A stretch of DNA of 64,000 bases, from the IMG/VR virus record IMGVR_UViG_3300042891_000711, positions 62,001 to 126,000 of that record. The stretch is one strand, 5' to 3'. Of this stretch, positions 1,339-55,526 are shown piece after piece. The position numbers and the translations under genes were made by a program. The notes beneath the pieces are model-generated. The model searched no databases. It was not told where the DNA came from and worked only from the letters and a program-made list of their open reading frames with translations. Every line of letters begins with the position of its first letter. Position 1 is the stretch's first letter.

Positions 1339-3291
1339 ATGACCATAACTACAGCACAATTTATTGCAATTAATACCGGACTTGTAGCAAATGACGGAAC
1401 CGGAGATGATTTACGCACAGCGTTTACTAAAGTAAATGATGCGTTTGCTAATATTGCAGATATTGGTTTCAATGCAGCAAATATCAGTGCCAGTGGTGCT
1501 ATCGAAGTAACCGGAAATGTAACTGCTGGAAATGTTAGTGCTACAAATTTATACGGTCTTATTCAGACCCCAACACAATCACAAATTACATCACTTGGCA
1601 CATTAACTGGTGCAAATATTAGTGGCGTCACACGTATTACAAATACTACTCAATCATTACAATTTAACAGCGGTGCATTAGTAATTGATGGTGGTGTTGG
1701 TATTGCTAAAGACGTATATATTCAAGGCAATTTGTATGTTGCTAATGCACTTGCAACTAGTGTAACAACCTTAGTATCGACTAGCCCGTTGGTATTTTTT
1801 GATACTGTTCCATCATATCCGTATAACTTTGACATTGGCTTCTTTGGAAGATTTACCGGTGGCGTTGGGAATTTAAGTCAGTTAACTGGCTTTGTGCGCA
1901 ATGATGCTGACGGTAAATGGAATTTATTTAGTAATGTAGCAAATGCTACAGTTACCACACAAATGTCATTGACCAATGCCAAATATGATACGTTAGTACT
2001 AGGTAATATCGAAATTAACTCACCTACACCAACTGCAATTACCAACGGTGGTACAACTGCTACTGGTAATATTGGTGCTAGTGGTGCAACATTTAACTAT
2101 GGTTATTTTACTAATCTAGTTGGAACACTACAAACAGCGACACAAAATAATATCACATCAGCAAGTGCATTGGCTACTGTTGGTACAATTACTTCCGGAA
2201 CATGGAGTGCTTCGTTTGGAAATGTAAGTGGTGCAAACTTAACTGTATTAACTGCAGGTAATTTGATAGGTACTATACCAAGTACAGTCATGAGCAATTC
2301 AACTGTACACGTTGGTACAACTGCAATTCCGTTAGATCGTGCAAGTGCTATACAAACATTAAGTGGTGTAAGCATCGATGGTAGTGCTGGATCTGTTGCT
2401 GCCAGCGCACTTACGGGCGCAGCATTGCCAACTGCGGTCGTAGGTTCGAACTTACAATCGGTGGGTACTCTCGGGTCATTAGCAGTAACTGGTAACATAA
2501 GAACAAACGGCACGTTAATAGCCAATGGTGCTGTAGCAAGTACATCAACCGCAACTGGAGCATTACTGGTAACAGGCGGAGTTGGTGTCACTGGTAATAT
2601 TAATGCGGCCGGTAGTGTAACTGCACCAACATTTATTGGTAATGTAACTGGCAACATAACTGGTAACATAACTGGTAATACCGCAGGTACGCATATAGGT
2701 GCAGTAGTAGGCAATGTAACTGGTAATGTAAGTGGGTCAGCGTTAACAGTAACACAAGCGGCACAATCAGCAATCACATCACTAGGAACATTAACGGGAT
2801 TAACCGTAAGTGGCACAATCGCTGCTAGTACAAACAATACCATTAATATAGGTGCTGTAGGTACAACATTTGCCACAGTATTTGCTACTACATTTAGTGG
2901 TGTATCAACTACAGCAAGATATGCTGACTTAGCAGAAAATTATCTAAGTGACTCTAAATACGAAGCTGGCACGGTAGTAGTATTTGGTGGCGATAAAGAA
3001 ATTACAACTACACAATTATTTGCCGATACTGCCGTAGCTGGAGTTATATCAACTAACCCTGCATATTTGATGAACGATGCATTAGATGGGCAGCCAGTGG
3101 CATTACGCGGTCGTGTTCCAGTAAAAGTACAAGGTTTTACTAGAAAAGGTGATTTGTTAGTTACAGGTAATATTCCCGGTGTTGCAGTAAGTGTTGGCCG
3201 TGATGGCAAATACGGATATGCTGTATTTGCCAAAGCATTAGAAAATAAGACCACCACTGATGTTGGTGTTATCGAAGCAGTGATTATTTAA
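1339..3291 (+). CDS. tail fibre/baseplate-associated protein with probable C-terminal intramolecular chaperone domain
   Basis: N-terminal ANDGTGDDLRTAFTKVN (T4 gp9/gp10-like motif), GNITGNITGN and GALxVxGGVG repeats, C-terminal YADLAENY domain. Confidence 0.8.
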   Translation: MTITTAQFIAINTGLVANDGTGDDLRTAFTKVNDAFANIADIGFNAANISASGAIEVTGNVTAGNVSATNLYGLIQTPTQSQITSLGTLTGANISGVTRITNTTQSLQFNSGALVIDGGVGIAKDVYIQGNLYVANALATSVTTLVSTSPLVFFDTVPSYPYNFDIGFFGRFTGGVGNLSQLTGFVRNDADGKWNLFSNVANATVTTQMSLTNAKYDTLVLGNIEINSPTPTAITNGGTTATGNIGASGATFNYGYFTNLVGTLQTATQNNITSASALATVGTITSGTWSASFGNVSGANLTVLTAGNLIGTIPSTVMSNSTVHVGTTAIPLDRASAIQTLSGVSIDGSAGSVAASALTGAALPTAVVGSNLQSVGTLGSLAVTGNIRTNGTLIANGAVASTSTATGALLVTGGVGVTGNINAAGSVTAPTFIGNVTGNITGNITGNTAGTHIGAVVGNVTGNVSGSALTVTQAAQSAITSLGTLTGLTVSGTIAASTNNTINIGAVGTTFATVFATTFSGVSTTARYADLAENYLSDSKYEAGTVVVFGGDKEITTTQLFADTAVAGVISTNPAYLMNDALDGQPVALRGRVPVKVQGFTRKGDLLVTGNIPGVAVSVGRDGKYGYAVFAKALENKTTTDVGVIEAVII

Positions 3292-3299
3292 GGTATATT

Positions 3300-6200
3300 A
3301 TGGCATTACCAAAGTGGATTACTCCGGCAGGACAATTAGGAATCGTACCAGAAACTGAGTACTATGAATATAACTTGGATGCATACGATGCAACTGGTGG
3401 TACATTAGTTTATAGTCACATCTCAGGTAAGTTACCCTTAGGTATACAATTGATACCCACTGGTAAATTACAAGGTATTCCAATAAGTGAGTTAGGCGGC
3501 GACAGAAATGTCACCTATACATTTACCATCAGAGTAAAAAATTCTACCACAAACGGAGTGTCAGATAGAACATTTAATATTACAGTATCTAATGTTGCTC
3601 CCCCAATTATTATACCACGTGATGTTGATTTAGGTATATACTTCGATGGCACTATAGTTAATATACAATTAGAAGCAGTCGAATCTACCCCTGGCGCAAA
3701 TTTGATTTGGCGCAAAAGTAGTGGTGAATTGCCGCCGGGATTGTCCATTTCTGCGGCCGGATTAATATATGGATATATCGAACCAATCGTTGGGCCAGGT
3801 CCTGGTAGCGATCCAGGATGGGATCAAACTCCGTGGAATATACTTGGCTGGGATTTTTCATTAATAGCAATTAGTAAAGCATTTACTTTCACCGTGGAAG
3901 TTTCTGATGGTGTTAACTACGATGCAACTCCATACAGAATATTAATAGTACCACAGGATGCACTTCAAGCAGATGCTACTACAATTACAACAGATACCAC
4001 AGAAAGTGGTGGAGACGAACTTACCATTGATGTTGGTGCAAGACATGAACCAATTATAGTAACTACACAAGTCGAATTAGAACCACAGCGACAAAGCAGT
4101 TACTTTTCATTCCAAATTGTTGGATTAGATTTAAATGGTGATGTATTGCAGTATATATTGCCTGCTACCGAAACTGGCAAATTCGATGAAGAATTACTAG
4201 TCGGGCCAGAAAGTCCTTATATCAATTCAACTTTGATCGGCGGTAATTTATTTGTAGGTGTTAATTCAACTATTAATTCCACTGAGCCTGCATTATTATC
4301 AGGTGATGATATTAAGGTATTAAGTTTAACCAGCCCAGATGAATTAAATTGGTATAATGCCACCGTAAACAATTACATTAAATTAAGATTGACTGGTAAT
4401 AAAGTAATTACTGGTTCTGTTGGTAATTTTATCACACAGGCAATAAGCGGTGCCAACGCTACAATATCTAGTATTAGTACTACAACGGGTAGTATAGAAG
4501 TTGCAGGCAATGTTATTGTTGGTAGTTTAGAAATACGTGGTAATACCAACATAGGTACACTTTCAGTTTCAAACCAATTAATTACAGCAAATGTGGGCGA
4601 TTTTATTACGCAAGTTAGTGGATCTGCAAATGCCACAGTTCGAGCAAATGTAGTAAGTTCATTATCTGTACCAATTGAATTAACCTCAGGTGTATTTACT
4701 AATGGCTCCGAAAATATAAAAATTAATGGTAGTACCATTAATGCATATCCAGTATCTTCTACATTCGATGATATATTAGTCACTGCCAACATTGGCGATA
4801 TAATAACACAAACAAGTAGTGGTGCAACTGCTACTGTAACTGCAAATGTTGTATCTGTAGTCGAAATACCAGTAGTGTATACCAGCGGAACATTTACGTT
4901 TAATTCAGGCAATATACAAATTAATTCTACAAATATAAATGCGTATCCTCGTTTATTTACAGGAACCGTAAATCCAGTAGGAGTTACTGCTAATGTAGGC
5001 GATGTAATAACACAAACAAGTAGTGGTGCAACTGCTACTGTAACTGCAAATGTCGCATCAGCACTGGTTATCCCAGTAACGTTCACTTCGGGTATATTTA
5101 CTACAGGATCTGGCAATATCACAGTTGGTGCAACTAATGTACCAGCACACCCAACTAACATCGCGGCAGAAGCTGATGTGGGTATGGTATATAACAGTGC
5201 AAATAATTTTCTATTAGATTCAGCTGCCGCTTCGGCGATTGTATATATTAATTATGTTAGTACTGGGGCAACACCTACATCTGTAATCAGTGTTGGGGTA
5301 ACACTGGGATTGATATCAACTGAAGGCACTGTTGGATTTGATGAAGCTAAATTTGATCAAAGCCCGCTGGCTATTGCTGAAGGTATAACTTTAGATATAG
5401 ATTCTGGATGGTTAACTGGACGATTGCCAACTTTAACTGCCAACGAAACTAATTATCTATTTGAAGTGTTAGTGTACAAACGAGATTATCCTGCATACCA
5501 AACCAGTGGACTATTCACATTAACTGTGTTAGGCGATTTAAACAATAAAATTAACTGGATTACCCCAAGTGATTTGGGTACTATTGAGAATGGTCGTGTA
5601 AGTGATTTGTCTATTAATGCAGTATCCACCAAAGGTAAAAATGTACAATATTCATTGACACCAGCATCTGCACATCGATTGCCACAGGGACTAAAACTTA
5701 TCCCTAGTGGACTAATATCTGGCAGAGTTAGTTTTGAATTGTTTAGTTTAGATCAAGGCACTACATTCTTGGATGGAACTATACTCGGCGATGCAACTAC
5801 AACATTTGATGCTACATATACATTCACTGTCACTGCTCGTGATTATGATAACAGTATCACAGCGGATCGTACATTTACTATTCGAGTACTTAATAGAAAT
5901 ACTATGCCATATGAAGATTTATATCTTAAATCTCTGTCATCAAAAGAACAACGTGCGCAATTTACATCAATTATGCGCAACACATCTATATTTCCGCCAA
6001 ATCTAATATATCGTAATGATGATCCATATTTTGGCCTGGCGGATACTATAAAAACATTATTTTTACCAGGATTGAATCCAAGTTTATTATCAGAATATGC
6101 GGCGGCGGTATCGACTAACCACTACGAAAAAAGAATTACATTGGGTAATGTAAAAACAGCAGTTGCTCGAGATAGTAACTTTAATATCAAATATGAAGTT

Positions 6201-7310
6201 GTGTATTTAGAAGTGACTGATGATAATACAAATGCAGATGGCCAAGGGCCAGCAGATATACAATTTCCGGCCATGGCCACTCCGTATTATGATTATGAAG
6301 GAAATACTTACACTACTGCATACCCAAATTCTTTCAGTAATATGAAAGATGTTACTGTTTCGGCATTGGGATATGCTAATAAAGGGGCATTGCCTGACTG
6401 GATGACCAGTAGACAAGCAAATGGTTTCATACTTGGATTTACTCGTGCAGTAGTACTTGCGTACACTGTACCAGGTGCAAGTAGTTTAATTGCTTATAGA
6501 TTTGCGCAACAAGACTTTAATGTCAACGAAATTGACTTTACCGTTGATAGATATCAAGTTGATAATATATACACGGCTAATTACGATATTACTGCTGGTG
6601 CATTTATTACCAGTAGAGAAACAACCTTTGACCGTTATCCTGGATTATCCAGTGTGTTTGTGGCCACTGGCACAGTTGATTATGCTGTGAGTATATCATA
6701 TGAAAGTATCAACAATCGTGCAAAATCATCTATTATTAGTCTTGGTGGTTTAGATGGTATTAAGTCCTTCAAAGATGGTGAAACACTAGTATTTGCACGC
6801 CAAGAATTTAGACAAGATCAAAACGATATCGGTGATTACAACCAAGGGTGGAATGATGTTGCTACAGTGTGGGGCGGAGATTCTTGGGATTATGATAATA
6901 ACACAGCTACCTTGATAGATGATCTAGGATGGGATGCCGCTAGCGCAGTCCCTGGATATAGAGAAAATAATCTTGATCCAACGGTAGATAACGAACGTAT
7001 CGGCATATGGCGTATTAACATCGCAACTGATGGTATGGTTACCTTAACCTACCTACAAGAAGTATCATTCTATAATAAATTATACGTGAGAAATGGTTAC
7101 ACCTACGGTGCAACTAATATCTACTATGATCCAGTTATCAAACCAGGTAATTTAATACCAAATTACAGTATTATACCAGAAGAAGTAAAAATATTATCCA
7201 CACAATTTGACGGAAATGGTACACGTTTCTACAGCTATCGAGATAGTTATACTATACCTGAAGCCGGAGATAAATACATTAAATTTAGTAAACTCGGAGT
7301 ATTTAATTAA
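3300..7310 (+). CDS. large virion structural protein with putative Ig-like domains (baseplate/tail)
   Basis: Repeated LPxGL...G.ISG...YTFTV Ig-like motifs and internal ANVGDxITQ repeats; structural operon context. Confidence 0.75.
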   Translation: MALPKWITPAGQLGIVPETEYYEYNLDAYDATGGTLVYSHISGKLPLGIQLIPTGKLQGIPISELGGDRNVTYTFTIRVKNSTTNGVSDRTFNITVSNVAPPIIIPRDVDLGIYFDGTIVNIQLEAVESTPGANLIWRKSSGELPPGLSISAAGLIYGYIEPIVGPGPGSDPGWDQTPWNILGWDFSLIAISKAFTFTVEVSDGVNYDATPYRILIVPQDALQADATTITTDTTESGGDELTIDVGARHEPIIVTTQVELEPQRQSSYFSFQIVGLDLNGDVLQYILPATETGKFDEELLVGPESPYINSTLIGGNLFVGVNSTINSTEPALLSGDDIKVLSLTSPDELNWYNATVNNYIKLRLTGNKVITGSVGNFITQAISGANATISSISTTTGSIEVAGNVIVGSLEIRGNTNIGTLSVSNQLITANVGDFITQVSGSANATVRANVVSSLSVPIELTSGVFTNGSENIKINGSTINAYPVSSTFDDILVTANIGDIITQTSSGATATVTANVVSVVEIPVVYTSGTFTFNSGNIQINSTNINAYPRLFTGTVNPVGVTANVGDVITQTSSGATATVTANVASALVIPVTFTSGIFTTGSGNITVGATNVPAHPTNIAAEADVGMVYNSANNFLLDSAAASAIVYINYVSTGATPTSVISVGVTLGLISTEGTVGFDEAKFDQSPLAIAEGITLDIDSGWLTGRLPTLTANETNYLFEVLVYKRDYPAYQTSGLFTLTVLGDLNNKINWITPSDLGTIENGRVSDLSINAVSTKGKNVQYSLTPASAHRLPQGLKLIPSGLISGRVSFELFSLDQGTTFLDGTILGDATTTFDATYTFTVTARDYDNSITADRTFTIRVLNRNTMPYEDLYLKSLSSKEQRAQFTSIMRNTSIFPPNLIYRNDDPYFGLADTIKTLFLPGLNPSLLSEYAAAVSTNHYEKRITLGNVKTAVARDSNFNIKYEVVYLEVTDDNTNADGQGPADIQFPAMATPYYDYEGNTYTTAYPNSFSNMKDVTVSALGYANKGALPDWMTSRQANGFILGFTRAVVLAYTVPGASSLIAYRFAQQDFNVNEIDFTVDRYQVDNIYTANYDITAGAFITSRETTFDRYPGLSSVFVATGTVDYAVSISYESINNRAKSSIISLGGLDGIKSFKDGETLVFARQEFRQDQNDIGDYNQGWNDVATVWGGDSWDYDNNTATLIDDLGWDAASAVPGYRENNLDPTVDNERIGIWRINIATDGMVTLTYLQEVSFYNKLYVRNGYTYGATNIYYDPVIKPGNLIPNYSIIPEEVKILSTQFDGNGTRFYSYRDSYTIPEAGDKYIKFSKLGVFN
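4801..5053 (+). repeat. 49-bp exact direct repeat (4801-4849 and 5005-5053)
   Basis: TAATAACACAAACAAGTAGTGGTGCAACTGCTACTGTAACTGCAAATGT twice, 204 bp apart, in frame. Confidence 0.9.
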
Positions 7311-8828
7311 ATGTCATCAATTAACCCAAATAACATTAACGGAAGCTATCCTATTGCTGGTCAAGATAATGACTCGCAGGGATTTCGTGATAATTTCACA
7401 AACGTTAAAAACAACTTAACCTTTGCTAAGACAGAGATAGAAGATTTACAAACTAATGCTATTTTAAAAACTGGACTAGCAGGTACTACATTAAACAATG
7501 AAATGAATTATGCGCAGATTAAAGGTGCACAATTAATTAAGACAGTTGAAACAATCAAAGATTGGGCAACACAAACTTCAGTTGAAATTAGCTTTGCAGA
7601 TGGTCACTACCAAAAAGTAACTACCGGTGGCCCATTCACTATTAGTGCATTTACTGGTTGGCCAACAAGTCAATTATATGCTAAATTAAGACTTGAAATT
7701 TATATTTCTACTCCATTAACCGATACAGTAACATTGCCAAGTGCAGTTTCTGTAGGACTTACAAATATACAAGGAGCTGTTGGACAAACTATTACATTCC
7801 CAACTGCTGGTTCATATGTATTTGAATTCACAACATACAATGCAGGTACTACAATTACCATTAATGATTTAACCCGTAATTACAATATAGTATCGGGATC
7901 ATCGACATTTAGTACAATCCAAGTTAGTACATTGGCTAATATTACTAGCAATGTTATATCGACATCAACAACTACAGGTGCATTGAAAGTAGCTGGTGGT
8001 GCAGGTATTGTAGGTAATTTATATGTAGGCGGGGATCTTGTTGTTACTGGTGCATTAGTTGACCCAGCAAATATATTCGAAGTAACAGTAGATGATGATG
8101 GTTCTGGCGCGCAAGAAGTATTTTTTCTAAATGGTACAGAATTAAAAACTAATACTGGTACAGAATTTGGTCTACGTTTTTATCCCGGAAACACATATAG
8201 ATTTGATTTAAGTGATGCTACTAATTTACTTGCTCCATTAAGATTTTCCACTACTCCGGATACTGCGGTTCCTGCATCAATTACTCCGTATACTACGGGA
8301 GTAACATCGTCTGGCCTCTCAGGCAATGTAGGCGCTTATATACAAATAACCATTGAATCTGATACCCCTACGTTATATCTATACGGTGATGAAACTGGTA
8401 CTATGATGGATACTAGTTTAGTTGGTGCTGCGCTTCCTATAGGAAGTGGAATTGACGCAAATGGTGATTCAACTATCACTGGTGACTTTACTGTTACTGG
8501 TAATTTGACTGTTGGTGGTGCAAAAATTGACACCGGCTATCAATATAGTGCCGCAACGACTGGTTTTAACCAAACTGTTGGTGCTAGTGTATCGCGTGTA
8601 ATTTATAACCCAGCCGGCACATTAGCCAACGGTACATTAACTTTACCAGCAGGTAATGTTGAAGCTAAAGTTGTTACTGTATCAAGTACTGCTAATATCA
8701 CCGCATTCCAAGTATTACCGAGTGTAGGTACAACATTAGTACCAAGTGCCAACGTTACATTAACTGCTGGAACAAGTGTATCATACTTTTACCATGCATC
8801 AGAAACTAAATGGTATAAAATAGGTTAA
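7311..8828 (+). CDS. virion structural/tail protein
   Basis: N-terminal YPIAGQDNDSQGFRDNF, GALKVAGGAGIVGNLYVGG fibre repeat, Thr/Gly-rich. Confidence 0.7.
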   Translation: MSSINPNNINGSYPIAGQDNDSQGFRDNFTNVKNNLTFAKTEIEDLQTNAILKTGLAGTTLNNEMNYAQIKGAQLIKTVETIKDWATQTSVEISFADGHYQKVTTGGPFTISAFTGWPTSQLYAKLRLEIYISTPLTDTVTLPSAVSVGLTNIQGAVGQTITFPTAGSYVFEFTTYNAGTTITINDLTRNYNIVSGSSTFSTIQVSTLANITSNVISTSTTTGALKVAGGAGIVGNLYVGGDLVVTGALVDPANIFEVTVDDDGSGAQEVFFLNGTELKTNTGTEFGLRFYPGNTYRFDLSDATNLLAPLRFSTTPDTAVPASITPYTTGVTSSGLSGNVGAYIQITIESDTPTLYLYGDETGTMMDTSLVGAALPIGSGIDANGDSTITGDFTVTGNLTVGGAKIDTGYQYSAATTGFNQTVGASVSRVIYNPAGTLANGTLTLPAGNVEAKVVTVSSTANITAFQVLPSVGTTLVPSANVTLTAGTSVSYFYHASETKWYKIG

Positions 8829-19789: not shown

Positions 19790-20635
19790 ATGCAAATTAC
19801 AGCAGGTATAATCAAAGCAATATTTCCAAAGTACAAGCATCCAGAAGACCTAGCAGAAGTACTTACAGAGCAATTTGAAAAGTACGAGATTAACACAGTT
19901 AATCGTGCTGCAGGCTTCTTAGCACAATGCGGACATGAGTCTGCAGGCTTTACAATCTTAAAAGAAAACTTAAACTACTCAGCAGAGGGTTTAAACAAAA
20001 TCTTTAAAAAATACTTCCCTACACTAGCAAGTGCTCAACCATATCATCGTCAACCAGAAAAGATTGCTAACAAAGTCTACGGTGGACGTATGGGCAATGG
20101 ACCAGAGTCAAGCGGCGATGGATTTAAGTTCTGTGGCCGTGGTGCTATTCAACTTACAGGTCGCGATAACTATACTAAATTTGCTAATTCGGTAGGCTTA
20201 ACTGTAGAAGAAGCAGTGGCAGATTTAGAAACACTAGATGGTGCTATCGAATCAGCATGCTGGTTCTGGAAAACAAATGGCCTAAATGCTATCTGTGATA
20301 CAGATGATATTGTTAAAATGACTAAACGTATTAACGGCGGCACAATTGGCTTGGAAGACCGCACAAAACACTACAAAGAAGCTAAACACTTGTTAGGTGG
20401 CGGACACGTAGCAGAGTCACATGCGGCGCCTGCATCTACTACAGAGTACGTAACAGTGCGTGTAGGTAGCAATAACGACACAGTCAAAGCAGTACAAAAA
20501 GCATTAGGACAAACAGCAGATGGTAAGTTTGGTCCGGGTACAGAGAAAGCAGTTAAAGCATGGCAAACAGCACATGGCCTAACAGCAGATGGTATTGTTG
20601 GTCCGGCAACTATTCGTAAGATGCTAGGAGAATAA
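19790..20635 (+). CDS. endolysin, GH19 plus peptidoglycan-binding domain
   Basis: FLAQCGHES, ENLNYS, GRGAIQLTGRDNY, INGG; C-terminal ADGKFGPGT...ADGIVGPAT. Confidence 0.93.
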   Translation: MQITAGIIKAIFPKYKHPEDLAEVLTEQFEKYEINTVNRAAGFLAQCGHESAGFTILKENLNYSAEGLNKIFKKYFPTLASAQPYHRQPEKIANKVYGGRMGNGPESSGDGFKFCGRGAIQLTGRDNYTKFANSVGLTVEEAVADLETLDGAIESACWFWKTNGLNAICDTDDIVKMTKRINGGTIGLEDRTKHYKEAKHLLGGGHVAESHAAPASTTEYVTVRVGSNNDTVKAVQKALGQTADGKFGPGTEKAVKAWQTAHGLTADGIVGPATIRKMLGE

Positions 20636-20636
20636 C

Positions 20637-21089
20637 ATGTGGATGTTAACATTTATTCCGGATAGCATCTTACATGCGTTCGTTAATTCTGTATTCTATG
20701 CTGGTATCATTACTTCATTATTGGGCTTTGTATTCAATTTTAGTTATCTTAGACCCTATCGACTAATAGTACAAGTTGTAGGTATCATGCTGTTAGTAGC
20801 AGGTGTGTATTTTAAAGGCGGCTACGAAGTTGAACAACAATGGCGAGCACGTGCTGCAGAATTACAATCAAAAATAGATACTGCTGTAGTTAAAAGCCAA
20901 ACTGCTAACACAGTGATTCAAACTAAAGTAGTTACCAAAATTAAACGAGTTAAAGAAATACAGGTACAACTACAAAAAGAAATTATTGAAAAAGAAAAGA
21001 TCATCAACGGTGAATGTGTAGTGCCCAAAGAAGCTATCGAAATACTAAACAAAGCCGCTGAAGGGCCTAGCAAGGAGGAAACTAAATGA
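20637..21089 (+). CDS. i-spanin (Rz-like)
   Basis: N-terminal TM segments then coiled coil, downstream of endolysin. Confidence 0.7.
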   Translation: MWMLTFIPDSILHAFVNSVFYAGIITSLLGFVFNFSYLRPYRLIVQVVGIMLLVAGVYFKGGYEVEQQWRARAAELQSKIDTAVVKSQTANTVIQTKVVTKIKRVKEIQVQLQKEIIEKEKIINGECVVPKEAIEILNKAAEGPSKEETK

Positions 21090-21346
21090 GATATCTATTA
21101 GTAGTATTATTGCTCTCAGGATGTTCAACGCTAGTGCCAGTTCGAGCAACATTCCCAGACGTTCCTAGTGAACTTGCTATAGATTGCCCAGTTCTTAAAC
21201 AACTACCTGCAGACACAAACAAACTAAGTGATGTTGTAGGCAATGTAAGTGAAAATTACAGCACCTACTACGAGTGTCAGGCCAAACATGAAGCCTGGGG
21301 TATTTGGTATAAAGAACAACGTCGTATCTACGAGGAAATTAAATGA
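21086..21346 (+). CDS. o-spanin lipoprotein (Rz1-like)
   Basis: Lipobox LLSGC, Pro-rich, two further Cys. Confidence 0.75.
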   Translation: MRYLLVVLLLSGCSTLVPVRATFPDVPSELAIDCPVLKQLPADTNKLSDVVGNVSENYSTYYECQAKHEAWGIWYKEQRRIYEEIK

Positions 21347-21756
21347 AAAAGCTAGCCTTAGTTAGTCTAGTAGTATTATTAACTGGTTGCGCTAGTATTA
21401 ATACCATAATTGATGCTTACCGTATGGCCAAGTTCGACAGCAACGAATATAGTTTAGTCAATCAAATTCATACTCAAGCACAAGTGGGCGTGGCCAAATG
21501 TGGTACTAAAGATGTACTAGTTTATGTAGACAATGTTTATATTAAGAGCATAGAACTACGTAACTATTCAGCAAGCATTCCGCACAACAATGAAACAGTT
21601 ACAATGACTACAGAACTTGCGGCTATTACTAAAGGTCTTAAAGATCGTTATGATAGCGGTGACGAAGTTAGTAAAAAGTACTGCGAACTTAAATTTAACA
21701 ACATAGAAAACAGTTCGGGTACAATGAAAACAGTAATAGGAGCAAAACCAAGATGA
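21343..21756 (+). CDS. second lipoprotein in lysis cassette
   Basis: Signal peptide with lipobox LTGC. Confidence 0.7.
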   Translation: MKKLALVSLVVLLTGCASINTIIDAYRMAKFDSNEYSLVNQIHTQAQVGVAKCGTKDVLVYVDNVYIKSIELRNYSASIPHNNETVTMTTELAAITKGLKDRYDSGDEVSKKYCELKFNNIENSSGTMKTVIGAKPR

Positions 21757-22008: not shown

Positions 22009-22299
22009 ATGGTAACAGCAGCAGAAAAAAAATCAGAAGATTGGATGACCAGTAAATGGCGTCCACTAATGGCCGTAACATATATGGCAACAATTTGGTT
22101 TGACTTTATTGTAGGTCCAATCTTATTCAACTTACTTCAATATTGGAATCCAGGGCAGGCAGTGGGTATGTGGGTACCGTTAACATTACAGGGCGGTGGT
22201 TTATATCATATCTCTATGGGTGCTATTTTAGGTATTGCAGCATGGACACGCGGTAAAGAAAAAGTAGCAACTATCGAAGCAGGTGACTCGGGAAAGTAA
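22009..22299 (+). CDS. putative holin (3TM-holin/GTA-holin-like)
   Basis: KWRPLMAVTY...GAILGIAAWTRGKEK; follows endolysin and spanins. Confidence 0.75.
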   Translation: MVTAAEKKSEDWMTSKWRPLMAVTYMATIWFDFIVGPILFNLLQYWNPGQAVGMWVPLTLQGGGLYHISMGAILGIAAWTRGKEKVATIEAGDSGK

Positions 22300-22529
22300 C
22301 AGGGTTCGAAGACGCCCCAGTATTAAGTTCTTCGACAGAGCCTGTATGGTTAAGCCAACGCAATCCGGCAGATAATGTACCTGTAGCTAGTGTAGCACCA
22401 GTACTTAACGAACCAGAAGTTGCTGAAGGTTATGCGGCAGCAATTTCAAATGCTCCAGTTGAAGCAGAAGTTGCACCAGAACCTGTAGCAGTGGATCCTA
22501 ATAGACCGTTGCGTAGAAAGAAAACTTAA
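22290..22529 (+). other. predicted -1 programmed ribosomal frameshift site and 77-codon extension of the holin
   Basis: G GGA AAG (22290-22296) directly before TAA; -1 frame open to TAA 22527-22529 with no usable start; downstream stem TCGAAGA/TCTTCGA. Confidence 0.75.
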
Positions 22530-22553
22530 CCACAGGTAATTTCGATAGTAAAT

Positions 22554-22594
22554 AAAAAGGAGAGCTTGACAATTCTCCTTTTTTCACATACAAT
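22554..22594 (+). promoter_or_regulatory. terminator hairpin overlapping sigma70 promoter
   Basis: AAAAAGGAGA...TCTCCTTTTT hairpin with TTGACA (22566) in its loop, 17 bp, TACAAT (22589). Confidence 0.75.
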
Positions 22595-22601
22595 AACTAC
22601 T

Positions 22602-23435
22602 ATGACAGATGCATACTCAACACTAGGCGTACAACGTGGCGCCACAGACGAAGAAATTAAACGAGCTTATCGCAAGCTCGCTGCTAAACATCATCCTGAT
22701 AAAGAAGGTGGTGACACTGCTAAGTTTCAAGAGATACAGGGTGCATACGAAACGCTCTCGGATCCACAGAAACGACAACAACATGATAATCCAAATCCGT
22801 TTGCTGCAGGTGGTAATGGTGGTGGATTTGAATTTCATTTTGGCGGAGGTGGTCCTCAAGATATATTCAGCCAATTCTTTAGCCAACGTGCAGGAAATCC
22901 ATTTCATCAACAATCACAACCAAGACGTAATAAAGACCTACGTATCAATATAACTGTTACCTTAGCCGGTACGTTAAATGAACAACAAAAAACAGTAAGT
23001 GTACAGACTACTAAAAATGATAAGTTTAACGTAGATGTCAAAATACCGCGTGGTGTAAGTAACGGTACAACAATTAAATACACACAAATGGGCGATAACT
23101 TCTTCGAGTCGTTGACACGTGGTGACTTGTATGTTATTATTAATGTAATTGCTGATGCAAGGTTTGAAATACATGGTGTTAATTTAGTTAGTAATTTAGA
23201 AATTTCCTCAATTGAAGCCATGACAGGCACAGAAAAAGAAATAGAAGGCGTTGATGGTAGTACGTTCTTAATTAAGATCCCGCAAGGATGTCAATTTGGT
23301 ACTAAGTTTGGTCTACAAGGCAAAGGTCTATATCAAATGAATACAGACTATCGAGGTGATTTAATTGTTAATACAATAATTAAAACTCCAACATTAACAG
23401 CGGCACAGATAGAAATACTTAAAACAATTAACTAG
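22602..23435 (+). CDS. dnaJ: DnaJ/CbpA-class co-chaperone
   Basis: J-domain with HPD, G/F-rich linker, C-terminal domain, no Zn finger; ATG at 22602. Confidence 0.93.
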
Positions 23436-23449
23436 GCAAGGACTAAACA

Positions 23450-25759
23450 ATGGCAATAAATTCCAATCCCGAAATTGAAGAAATCATTGCGGCTGCAACT
23501 GATCTCGCACGTGATTATAGGCACGAATATGTAACACTCGAGCATTTGTTAATTGCACTCGTTGAATTTAGATCATTTAAGAAGTTGTTAACTGATTATG
23601 GCATTGACACTACACCGCTATTAGCAGACTTATACGAATACACTGCTCAACAGGATCATCTTGTTGACTTGTCGGATAAAGAAATCGTTCCACAACGTAC
23701 ACATAGTTTAGAGCGTGTGTTTAATCGTGCATTTACACAGGTGTTGTTTACAGCACGTGAGCAAATGGAGCCAGTGGATTTATTTCTAAGCATCAGTCAA
23801 GAAACTAATAGTCATGCCGCTTACTTTATGCTTAAATGGGGTATTAACCGTAAAGATCTAGTAAAATATTATGCAGATAAATTTGTCGATGGTAAAGCAG
23901 TCAAGACTAAAGATCCAAAAGTCAAACAGGATTACTCTGATGCAATATTAGAAGAATACTGTACAAATCTAAATGCCGTTGCTACAGAAGGCAAAATTGA
24001 TCCAGTTATTGGCCGTGAATACGAATTAGAAGAAATTGCACAGGTATTAGCACGTCGTCATAAATCCAACGTGCTTATGATTGGTGATCCAGGTGTGGGT
24101 AAAACTGCTATTGCAGAAGGTCTAGCATATAAAATAGTCAACGGTGAAGTGCCAGAATACTTAAAACCCTACACAGTCTATAACTTAGAGATTGGTAGCT
24201 TACTAGCAGGTAGTAAATATCGCGGCGAGTTTGAAGAAAAACTTAAAGATGTACTTGAATCACTGAACACCAAAGGCAATTGTATCTTGTTTATCGACGA
24301 AGCACATCAAATGCAAGGTGCCGGCGCAGGTAGTTCAAGCAGTGTAGATTTTGCTAATATGCTAAAACCTGCACTGGCCAAAGGTGGTATTAAAGTTATT
24401 GCATCAACTACCTACGAAGAATACACACAGTCATTCGAAAAAGACCGTGCGCTAATGCGTCGTTTCTATAAACTAAACATTGACGAGCCTAGTCCAGAAG
24501 TTGCCAAAGATATTTTACTTGGGCTTAAAGGGCACTTTGAAAAGTTCCATAATGGTGTAATCTTAGAAGAAGCAATTGAACTAGCTGTCGACCTAAGTGT
24601 ACGTTATCAAACAGACAAACGCTTACCAGATAAAGCTATTGACCTAATCGACATGAGTTGCGCACGTCTTAAAATTAATAATCCAACTTGGGTAGTTAAT
24701 GGCGATGCAATTGTTGAAACACTAGCTAAAGCAACTAAGATTCCTAAAGAGAATTTTGACAGCAAACATGCATCAACATCATTACCAAGTTTAGAAAGCA
24801 ACATTAAAGATAAACTATACGGACAAGATACCGCAGTTGATGCAGTACTTGAAAAGATTTATGTTGCTAAGGCCGGATTGAAAGCACATAACAAACCAGT
24901 AGGTAACTTTTTATTCTTAGGCCCAACTGGTACAGGTAAGACAGAGTTAGCTAAATTGCTTAGTGAAAACTTAGGTATGAAGTTAATCCGCTTTGATATG
25001 AGTGAATACCAAGAGAAGCATGCTATGGCTAAACTTATCGGCGCTCCCCCGGGCTATGTTGGCTATGAAGATGGTAACTTAGGTGGCGGCTTGCTAATTA
25101 GCGAAGTTGAGCGTAACCCACATTCAATTATCTTACTAGATGAAATTGAAAAGGCTCACCCGGACATCAGTAACTTGTTACTACAGATTATGGACGAAGG
25201 TACTATTACTGGTAGTAACGGTAAGAAAGCGGATTGCCGCAATGCTATGCTAGTATTAACTAGTAACTTAGGTTCAGCAGACAACGAGCAAAACAACATT
25301 GGCTTTGGGCGTGACTTACAAAAATCAGGCGAAGATGATAGTGCTGTTAAAAAGTTCTTCAAACCAGAGTTCCGCAATCGTTTAGATGCAGTTGTTAAAT
25401 TCAACGGACTTGATAAGATTAGCATGAAGAAGATTGTTGTTAAATTCTTAAACGAGCTTAACGAATTGCTTGCAGAGAAACAAATTAAACTACGTTCAAC
25501 AGAAGCACTAGTTGACCACTTAGTTGAAGTTGGATTCGATCGAGCAATGGGCGCACGTCCACTATCACGTAAGATCAGCGAGTTAATCAAAGTGCCGTTG
25601 AGTAAGAAAATCTTGTTTGATAACATTGCCAGTGGCAGTAGTATTACCGCAGACTATGTCAACGATGCTGTAGATTTTATAGTAGTTGATCCAATCGATG
25701 ATATGATTCTATTAGAAAATAAAACAGTTGATGACGAAGGTTTTATTATAGTAGAATAA
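23450..25759 (+). CDS. clpA: ClpA-like AAA+ unfoldase
   Basis: Clp N-domain, GDPGVGKT and [26 protein letters not shown] loop. Confidence 0.93.
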
Positions 25760-52862: not shown

Positions 52863-55526
52863 ATGAGTTATGTTGACGCACTGTTTGACAGGGCAAAAGA
52901 TCGTATCTACGTTGTAGAAAGAAAAGAAGGCATGCGCGAGTATGTCGAATACCCAGCAAATTATGTCATGTACATTGATGACCCTAAGGGTAAGTATCGC
53001 ACAGTATATGACACTCCAGTAAGTCGTTTCAGCACACGTGTTGGCAAGGAATTCCACAAAGAAACACGTATTCAATCGGGCAAGCGTATATGGGAAAGTG
53101 ATATCAATCCTGTGTTCCGTTGTTTATCAGATAACTATCTTGGTATTGATTCACCTAAACTACAAACTGCGTTTTGGGATATTGAAACAGACTTTGACCC
53201 AGCACGTGGGTATGCTCCTACCAGCGATCCGTTTAATCCTATTACAGCTATATCAGTTTACTTAGATTGGCTAGACAAGTTAGTTACCTTAGTTATTCCG
53301 CCCAAGAGCTATAGTTGGGAAACTGCACAGGAAATATGTGACCAGTATGAAAACTGTTTTATGTTTGAACGTGAAGCAGACATGTTGGATACATTCCTTA
53401 ATCTAATTGATGATGCAGATGTCTTAAGTGGCTGGAACAGTGAGGGCTATGATATTCCATATACTATTGGGCGTGTTACACGTGTGTTAAGCAAAGATGA
53501 CACTAGACGCTTTTGTCTATGGGGTCAGTATCCAAAACAGCGTGAATTTGAACGTTTTGGTGCCGCAAACATCACTTTTGACCTCATTGGCAGGGTTCAT
53601 TTAGACTACATGCAGTTGTACCGCAAATACACCTATGAAGAGCGACATAGTTATAGTTTAGATGCTATTGGTGAATATGAATTAGATGAGCGTAAGGTTG
53701 CCTATGAAGGTACATTGGATCAACTGTACAACAAAGACTTTCCTAAGTTCATTGACTATAACCGTCAGGATACTATGTTGCTAGGAAAACTAGATAAGAA
53801 GTTACGCTTCTTAGACTTAGCCAATGAACTTGCGCATGATAACACAGTGTTGCTACAGACTACAATGGGTGCTGTAGCAGTTACAGAGCAGGCTATCATC
53901 AATGAAGCACATCAACAAGGGTTAATTGTTCCTAATCGTAAGAATAGAGATGACATGGGCGATACACAAGCGGCAGGTGCTTATGTAGCCACTCCAAAAG
54001 CAGGCATGCATGATTGGATTGGTTCGGTTGATATTAACTCCCTGTATCCTAGTGCAATTCGTGCGCTTAACATGGGACCAGAAACTATTATTGGACAGAT
54101 ACGTCCAATTATGACAGACCATTATATCAATGAAAAGATGGCCAATAAGTCAAGTTTTGCAGATGCTTGGGAGGGCTTGTTCGCTACCCTAGAGTATACT
54201 GCGGTTATGGAAAGTAAACCCGGTGTTGAACTTACAATCGATTGGGAGGCTTCGGGAGAAAGTACTGTACACAGTGCGGCAGAAGTATGGACACTAATCT
54301 TCGATAGCAATCAACCATGGATACTCAGTGCTAATGGTACCATCTTTAGCTTTGAGAAAGAAGCAGTTGTTCCGGGTTTGCTAAAACGTTGGTATGCCGA
54401 ACGTAAAGAACTACAGGCTAAGATGCGTTCATGTACAGATCCAGAAGAGATTGCGTTCTGGGATAAGCGTCAGTTAGTTAAGAAGATTAACTTGAATAGC
54501 TTGTATGGTGCCTTATTGAATCCGGGCTGTCGTTTCTTTGATAAGCGTATTGGACAATCAACTACACTAACTGGTCGTACTATTGCTCGACACATGGATG
54601 CGTTTATTAATGAATGCTTCACTGGTGTATATGATCACACTGGTGATGCTATTATCTATGGTGATACAGACTCATGTTATTTTAGTGCTTGGCCTATGAT
54701 CAAAGATGAAGTTGAAGCTGGTAACATGGAGTGGAATGCCAGTATTGCTATTAAGCTGTATGACGATATTTCGGACCAGGTCAATGAAAGTTTTCCCGCA
54801 ATGATGGAACGTAGCTTTCACGTGCCACGCAGTATGGGCAGTGTGATCAAAGGCGGGCGTGAACTGGTTGCAAGTAAAGGCTTATTCATTAAGAAGAAAC
54901 GCTATGCTGTGCTGATTACAGACTTAGATGGCAAACGCATGGATACCCACGGCAAGCCTGGCAAGGTTAAGGCTATGGGCCTAGACTTGAAACGCAGTGA
55001 TACTCCAAAAGTAGTGCAGGATTTCTTAAGTGAGATTTTACTAGCGGCACTTACTGGTGTAGACAAAACTGCTATTATTGACATGGTGCGCGAGTTTAAG
55101 ATTGCGTTCCAAGATAGACCTGCTTGGGAGAAAGGTACACCCAAACGTGTAAACAATCTAACCAAGTTTACCAAAGCAGAAGAACGTGAAGGTCGTGCCA
55201 ATATGCCCGGACATGTACGTGCGGCTATGAACTGGAATAACCTAAAACGCATGCACGGTGATAACTATTCAATTAACATTGTCGATGGTATGAAAACTAT
55301 TGTGTGTAAGTTAAAAGATAATCCAATTGGATTTACCAGTGTGGGCTATCCAACAGATGGCACTCATATTCCGCAATGGTTCAAAGACTTACCTTTCGAC
55401 AATGACCTAATGGAGTCGACAATTGTTGATCAAAAAGTAGAAAACTTACTCGGTGTGCTTAAATGGAACATTACAGAAAGCACAGACATTAAAACTACAT
55501 TTGATGCATTGTTTAGTTTTGATTAA
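52863..55526 (+). CDS. family B DNA polymerase
   Basis: Exo DIET, GWNSEGYD; pol DINSLYPS, KINLNSLYG, YGDTDS, KKRY. Confidence 0.97.
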   Translation: MSYVDALFDRAKDRIYVVERKEGMREYVEYPANYVMYIDDPKGKYRTVYDTPVSRFSTRVGKEFHKETRIQSGKRIWESDINPVFRCLSDNYLGIDSPKLQTAFWDIETDFDPARGYAPTSDPFNPITAISVYLDWLDKLVTLVIPPKSYSWETAQEICDQYENCFMFEREADMLDTFLNLIDDADVLSGWNSEGYDIPYTIGRVTRVLSKDDTRRFCLWGQYPKQREFERFGAANITFDLIGRVHLDYMQLYRKYTYEERHSYSLDAIGEYELDERKVAYEGTLDQLYNKDFPKFIDYNRQDTMLLGKLDKKLRFLDLANELAHDNTVLLQTTMGAVAVTEQAIINEAHQQGLIVPNRKNRDDMGDTQAAGAYVATPKAGMHDWIGSVDINSLYPSAIRALNMGPETIIGQIRPIMTDHYINEKMANKSSFADAWEGLFATLEYTAVMESKPGVELTIDWEASGESTVHSAAEVWTLIFDSNQPWILSANGTIFSFEKEAVVPGLLKRWYAERKELQAKMRSCTDPEEIAFWDKRQLVKKINLNSLYGALLNPGCRFFDKRIGQSTTLTGRTIARHMDAFINECFTGVYDHTGDAIIYGDTDSCYFSAWPMIKDEVEAGNMEWNASIAIKLYDDISDQVNESFPAMMERSFHVPRSMGSVIKGGRELVASKGLFIKKKRYAVLITDLDGKRMDTHGKPGKVKAMGLDLKRSDTPKVVQDFLSEILLAALTGVDKTAIIDMVREFKIAFQDRPAWEKGTPKRVNNLTKFTKAEEREGRANMPGHVRAAMNWNNLKRMHGDNYSINIVDGMKTIVCKLKDNPIGFTSVGYPTDGTHIPQWFKDLPFDNDLMESTIVDQKVENLLGVLKWNITESTDIKTTFDALFSFD

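Follow-up and report, generated by a model that had tools for sequence, protein, structure and literature searches.

[quoted passage not shown] In bacterial dnaX, the tau and gamma products likewise share an N-terminal core and differ by a C-terminal extension, with the shift-site stop directly after the site, and both architectures occur in nature, that is, the long product by standard decoding with the short one by -1 shift, or the reverse (PMC5009743). Pseudoknot-stimulated -1 sites, in which an X_XXY_YYZ heptamer is followed by a short spacer and an H-type pseudoknot with an A-rich loop, are found in IS3-family elements and RNA viruses, and pseudoknots are used for productive -1 shifting by bacterial ribosomes (PMC5009743). 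Holin isoforms, on the other hand, are known from dual-start holin/antiholin pairs (lambda S105/S107, phage 21 S68/S71), where one gene yields two proteins with the same membrane core whose ratio, in lambda, appears to set lysis timing. Here we describe a lake-water jumbo phage holin gene with a conserved slippery site and RNA pseudoknot that very probably shift some ribosomes back one base, producing a short and a long holin from one gene.

The analysed DNA (hereafter the window) is a 64,000-nucleotide stretch of a 219-kb IMG/VR virus record (IMGVR_UViG_3300042891_000711) estimated to be 62% complete, and it recurs in many lake-water metagenomes. A blastn search of deposited phages returned nothing, and only a protein-level search revealed distant homologs of the holin, the nearest cultured ones being in jumbo phages Phosso, Atu_ph07 and PA5oct. 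The features of the locus are as follows.

19790..21346 (+), the rest of the lysis cassette, comprising the endolysin (19790-20635), an i-spanin-like gene (20637-21089) and an Rz1/LysC-like o-spanin (21086-21346)
22009..22299 (+), the holin gene in the zero frame, encoding the short isoform of 96 aa with two predicted TM helices and a short basic C-tail, and ending at TAA 22297-22299
22289..22296 (+), an invariant C followed by the slippery heptamer G_GGA_AAG (22290-22296) in X_XXY_YYZ phase
22297..22301 (+), a spacer of 5 nt (UAACA), the first three bases of which are the zero-frame stop codon
22302..22317 (+), pseudoknot stem 1, in which GGGU (22302-22305) pairs with GCCC (22314-22317) and the loop holds the 5′ arm of stem 2
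22306..22335 (+), pseudoknot stem 2, in which (UC)GAAGA (22306-22312) pairs with UCUUC(GA) (22329-22335), with an A-rich loop 3 at 22318-22328
22296..22529 (+), the -1 frame extension of 77 codons (VTGFEDAP...DPNRPLRRKKT) plus TAA, which when read after the shift gives the long isoform of 173 aa
22554..22584 (+), a terminator-like hairpin with a U-run, placed after the stop of the extension and not after the zero-frame stop

The sequence was found to be as given in the preliminary description. The ORF ends TCG GGA AAG TAA, and the -1 frame is closed by TGA at 22284-22286 and then remains open from 22287 to the TAA at 22527-22529, the only start-type codons in the extension being GTG at codon 65 and TTG at codon 71. 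The ORF matched Pfam PF11351 (GTA_holin_3TM) at 28.8 bits against a cut-off of 24.8, although only profile positions 55-117 of 123 were covered, and phrog_3427 ‘holin’ at E 6.5e-8. It closes a lysis cassette on the same strand, in which a GH19-type endolysin with a peptidoglycan-binding domain (PF01471, PF00182 and phrog_181), the i-spanin-like gene (Rz-like spanin PHROGs) and the o-spanin (PF23793 LysC) lie 0.7-2.2 kb upstream, and which also includes two small ORFs. No tail-chaperone family match was obtained, and only the heptamer is shared with the lambda G/GT system, which lies between the tail-tube and tape-measure genes; the holin locus also has a conserved 3′ pseudoknot, whereas the lambda site probably works without a strong 3′ structure. 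No lambda-type Met-Lys-Met start was present at the N-terminus (MVTAAEKK...), although an invariant Met13, which was not evaluated as a start, exists.

Hydropathy analysis of the holin core revealed one strongly hydrophobic segment (about residues 20-44) and one moderately hydrophobic segment (about 62-80). An AlphaFold model of the natural long homolog L013 (L numbers denote individual related loci) showed helices at 12-46 and 64-90 and a tail from residue 91 with pLDDT below 50, which is therefore predicted to be disordered, although the overall confidence of the model was low, with a mean of 55; two helices are thus predicted and not the three of this family, the first TM of which appears to be absent. 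Basic residues flank both helices on the N- and C-terminal sides and the connecting loop is uncharged, from which we infer, by the positive-inside rule, an N-in/C-in topology with a cytoplasmic tail. The tail of the window is rich in Pro, Ala, Val and Glu, with a net charge of -10 over the first 67 residues and +5 over the last 10.

An in-phase heptamer alone is not significant, and an open frame of 77 codons occurred in 0.7% of shuffles; the weight of the evidence comes from conservation. We collected 34 related loci from viral contigs and 80 from metagenomes, the two sets overlapping in part. Of 115 loci, all 68 with a short zero-frame ORF carried an in-phase GGGAAAR, whereas none of the 40 loci with a single long ORF had it at that place. 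Among 51 non-redundant complete split loci, the heptamer was GGGAAAA in 43 and GGGAAAG in 8, and the zero-frame stop was located 0 codons after it in 41 loci, 1 codon after it in 2 and 3 codons after it in 8. The -1 frame was open for 62-93 codons in 50 of the 51 despite many in-frame indels, the exception being L083, which has a single nonsense codon 4 codons into an otherwise intact tail, so that the long form can be lost, at least transiently. Fifty of the 51 ended in an RP.RR..K motif. In 14 diverged loci no stop was observed in the -1 frame, while the other two frames had 3-11 stops each. The third-position bias in the extension was weak (2512/2291/3200); the tail evolves fast (59-71% identity, where the core is 94-99%) and purifying selection on its sequence is loose.

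To see whether the trans-frame product resembles natural proteins, the conceptual -1 products were aligned with single-ORF homologs of 180-191 aa, such as L013 and L021, and they aligned end to end, sharing the motifs G.AP...EPQW(L/I/V) and DPNRP.RRKK. More distant relatives encode the same tail, ending RP.RR..K, in one continuous 144-194-aa ORF, and the cultured phages Phosso (174 aa) and Atu_ph07 (127 aa) also carry an in-frame low-complexity tail. These natural homologs indicate that the trans-frame product is a real protein, and the long form looks ancestral. A tree of the holin core (273 nt) was too poorly resolved to count gains and losses of the split form; it showed only that split and fused forms are interspersed, that the outgroups are fused and that at least 2 changes are required. 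As the outgroups have only the long form, the tail-less short form looks like the evolutionary novelty.

We next examined the region downstream of the heptamer, where 46 non-redundant junctions aligned without gaps, with a spacer of 4-5 nt in all of them. The preliminary description had proposed a nested hairpin with an outer ACAGG/CCTGT and an inner TCGAAGA/TCTTCGA pairing; the inner pairing exists and is stem 2 of an H-type pseudoknot, whereas the outer pairing is absent from most relatives. The GGG/CCC core of stem 1 was invariant in 46 of 46 junctions, although it covers synonymous sites of a Gly codon and an Ala/Thr codon, and the fourth pair was UG in 29 loci and UA in 3. In stem 2, the window pairing is replaced in other lineages by GGAAC/GUUCC, GAAAC/GUUUC, GGAGA/UCUCC and GAGGAC/GUCCU, and compensatory double changes were found at three pairs (GC34/AU12; AU33/GC13; CG33/AU8/GC2) with almost no unpaired cells. 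Overall, 88.3% of cells were paired, against 62% or less when partners were slid, and the covariation score was 0.265 against a shuffled mean of 0.134, a value reached by 0 of 500 shuffles. These changes alter the encoded residues on both arms (Glu-Asp/Ser-Ser versus Gly-Thr/Val-Pro), which argues for selection on the RNA. The window lineage has a weaker stem 1 (4 pairs) and a longer stem 2 (7 pairs), while the majority lineage has 5 pairs in each. Nested minimum-free-energy folding, which cannot model pseudoknots, was uninformative and not better than shuffles for the window (z = -0.5), and the Rfam search gave only noise (E about 0.8).

Across 55 non-redundant loci, GGGAAA, the C just before it and 7 of 19 third-codon positions in the cassette were invariant, against 12% in the holin core; these include the synonymous third positions of NCG and GGA, and three positions in loop 3 (A35, A36 and U38), while position 7 of the heptamer was A or G. 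The SD-like AGCAGGTGA noted in the preliminary description was not conserved, as the 12 nt before the heptamer vary between lineages, and its GGTGA sits only 3 nt upstream of the heptamer; a lineage-specific GGAG was noted 8 nt upstream in L014-type loci. In this respect the locus differs from dnaX, an unrelated protein, which uses A_AAA_AAG with a 5′ SD-like element and a 3′ stem-loop. No sequence or Rfam relationship was found to the pseudoknot sites of IS3-family elements and RNA viruses; here the host gene class is new and the pseudoknot lies wholly inside the sequence encoding the extension. A scan of the window found no tRNA genes, so there is no phage tRNA-Lys or tRNA-Gly here to link to shifting. 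The hairpin after the extension (-11.8 kcal/mol, z = -2.8), which was revealed by folding but not listed by a consensus terminator scan, is consistent with the extension being part of the transcription unit.

Taken together, comparative sequence analysis supports a programmed -1 ribosomal frameshift at the end of a two-TM holin gene (probability about 0.85), as the preliminary description had inferred, including its 96-aa holin and ~173-aa isoform with an acidic Pro/Ala/Glu tail and a basic end; its own test, conservation of the heptamer plus an open -1 frame in homologs, is passed. In the proposed mechanism, ribosomes reach G_GGA_AAG with tRNA-Gly in the P site and tRNA-Lys in the A site, and the compact pseudoknot starting 5 nt downstream resists unwinding. 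Most ribosomes, or some set fraction, would terminate at the adjacent UAA and release the tail-less holin, while the rest would slip back one base, so that GGA re-pairs as GGG and AAG as AAA, and read GUA ACA GGG and onward, adding the 77-aa tail to the same membrane core. G_GGA_AAG is highly shift-prone in E. coli, although the GGGAAAA of 43 of 51 relatives is less so (PMC5009743); the phage is uncultured and its host unknown, and slippage itself is inferred, without direct evidence of the trans-frame protein or of the efficiency. In lambda the charged cytoplasmic C-terminus of the holin probably modulates timing, and by analogy only, the ratio of tailed to tail-less holin may tune when the membrane hole forms. 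This would be a C-terminal counterpart of the dual-start pairs, the isoforms differing here by 77 residues at the C-terminus and arising during elongation, and not by 2-3 residues at the N-terminus arising at initiation as in lambda.

Unexpectedly, single-ORF relatives inside the same clade were found to keep the pseudoknot in the homologous register. L013 and L015/L017/L070 have an in-phase G_GGU_UUU 5 nt upstream of stem 1, followed by AA, so that a -1 slip would read UAA at once, and the L061 and L100 groups have an in-phase U_UUU tetramer followed by AG, which gives UAG in the -1 frame. L015 and L017 differ at two stem-2 positions, and both versions stay paired, whereas distant single-ORF relatives have neither the pseudoknot nor a shift motif. 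This suggests a role reversal as in dnaX, where the short product arises by the -1 shift in most bacteria and the roles are reversed in a minority, a reversal noted to be easy when efficiency is near 50% (PMC5009743). We treat the inverted layout as a hypothesis, since it is limited to a few, possibly related, lineages, and a pattern scan of viral contigs for more GGGTTTT-type holins returned only the three loci already known, plus an unrelated family. A still bolder and doubtful extension is that a clade of freshwater jumbo phages uses one pseudoknot as a reversible recoding switch, in which easy inversion implies a shift efficiency near 50% and selection for a fixed isoform ratio acting as a new kind of lysis clock.

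Among the alternatives, the one that survives best, though unlikely, is that the frameshift occurs but the long product is the only functional holin, the short form being an inert by-product of an indel that frameshifting corrects. The outgroups make only the long form, and such ‘savior’ frameshifting is a recognised category (PMC5009743). However, the close single-ORF relatives with the retained pseudoknot may also make a tail-less form, and an elaborate, conserved stimulator with the zero-frame stop kept within 0-3 codons across 51 loci suggests that both products are selected; the interspersion of split and fused forms on the tree also speaks against it.

Transcriptional slippage, which gives two products in some bacterial and phage genes (PMC5009743), is very unlikely, although most relatives have a run of four A. 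Productive slippage in bacteria needs runs of about 9 A or T (PMC5009743), whereas the runs here are 3-4 nt, and the downstream pseudoknot at ribosomal spacing and the strict X_XXY_YYZ phase are features of ribosomal, not polymerase, shifting. A contig from an RNA library, derived from a ~92%-identical relative, crosses the junction without an indel, although contigs drop rare variants and this does not prove transcription. Equally improbable is a separate small gene with its own or coupled initiation; overlapping and coupled genes are common in phage lysis cassettes, the o-spanin start overlaps the i-spanin end here at 21086-21089, and some loci have GTG, TTG or ATG codons inside the extension. 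Nevertheless, no locus has such a codon in the -1 frame between its upstream stop and codon 15 after the shift, 5 loci have none at all, and the most conserved N-proximal motif (G.AP...EPQW) lies before any candidate start, so this reading is largely refuted, and it does not explain the heptamer, the pseudoknot or the single-ORF homologs. Finally, a truncation by a 1-nt indel leaving a decaying remnant, for which the once in-frame tail, its fast evolution and the nonsense codon of L083 could be cited, is refuted by conservation, as a remnant would not keep an invariant heptamer, synonymous sites and a co-varying pseudoknot in 51 loci whose tails have diverged and changed length by whole codons, and an assembly error is ruled out by contigs from two independent DNA runs covering 22176-22573 and 22022-22573 with 0 differences and 0 gaps.

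Both the mechanism class and the idea of two holin isoforms are well known; what would be new, judged by the literature searched, is the gene class for recoding and the way of making holin isoforms. In the literature searched, including the first 300,000 characters of the 2016 recoding review and the PRFect survey, no frameshift within a holin gene was found, while one genome announcement mentions heuristic frameshift calls in genes ‘near predicted holins’ of Streptomyces phages (PMC9671017). For annotation, about 230 nt after holins with such a cassette is coding and should be joined to the holin and not left as an intergenic gap. The small pseudoknot (about 34 nt), with natural covariation and natural ‘fused’ and ‘split’ alleles, is a convenient model for bacterial pseudoknot-stimulated shifting, and the apparent role reversal offers a second natural case, beside dnaX, for studying how the two architectures interconvert. 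Lysis timing is a central fitness trait of phages, and the known way to get two holin isoforms from one gene is dual translation starts; a conserved frameshift cassette inside a holin gene would add a second, mechanistically different route, and would also extend programmed frameshifting in tailed phages beyond the tail-chaperone and capsid genes into the lysis machinery.

The base just 5' of the heptamer, at position 22289 and at the homologous positions in relatives, was found to be an invariant C. The codon to which it belongs is NCG, encoding Ser, Ala, Pro or Thr in different relatives, suggesting an E-site or context requirement beyond the heptamer. One relative (L083, positions 1761-2060) has GGGAAAG and the pseudoknot but carries a TAA four codons into the extension, while the rest of the tail is intact, including DPNRPARRKKK; this could be a recent loss of the long isoform or a sequencing error. 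In three other relatives (L023, L024 and L026; about 3380-4700 in L023) the holin has a short in-frame tail (128-130 aa) and no pseudoknot. Its stop in these relatives overlaps the start of a 436-469-codon ORF (TAATG), so the gene neighbourhood differs from that of the window.

An unrelated group of viral contigs (loci L123-L130, L134-L136, L138 and L140) was found to share the exact pattern GGGTTTTAAT..GGGG(N10-11)CCCC within a conserved stretch that is not in an open frame. These contigs are about 3-6 kb long, except that one locus, L126, is from a 54-kb contig, and the shared pattern is possibly a conserved hairpin in small phage genomes.

The following features of the window were also noted.

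1339-8828: large tail-fibre-like ORFs, lying upstream
20637-21756: the i-spanin-like protein and the two lipoprotein-type ORFs that follow it
22554-22594: terminator-like hairpin and near-consensus promoter-like site
22566-25759: DnaJ-like co-chaperone and ClpA/ClpB-like AAA+ protein
52863-55526: family-B-like DNA polymerase

A search with ARAGORN found no tRNA genes in the 64-kb window (1-64000). Within the lysis cassette, the i-spanin-like protein (150 aa) has an unusually long hydrophobic N-terminal region, possibly with more than one TM, and it is followed by two lipoprotein-type ORFs (86 aa, LysC-like, and 137 aa) and not by one.

Directly after the lysis cassette, the phage encodes a full DnaJ-like co-chaperone (J domain plus DnaJ_C), for which the ATG at 22602 is the likely start, together with a 769-aa ClpA/ClpB-like AAA+ protein (phrog_4871, E 1.8e-240); phage-encoded chaperones of this size are unusual. 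The promoter-like site (TTGACA, 17 nt, TACAAT; 11 of 12 matches) has its -35 hexamer inside the loop of the terminator-like hairpin that follows the holin extension, and termination of the lysis transcript and initiation of the DnaJ transcript may therefore overlap.
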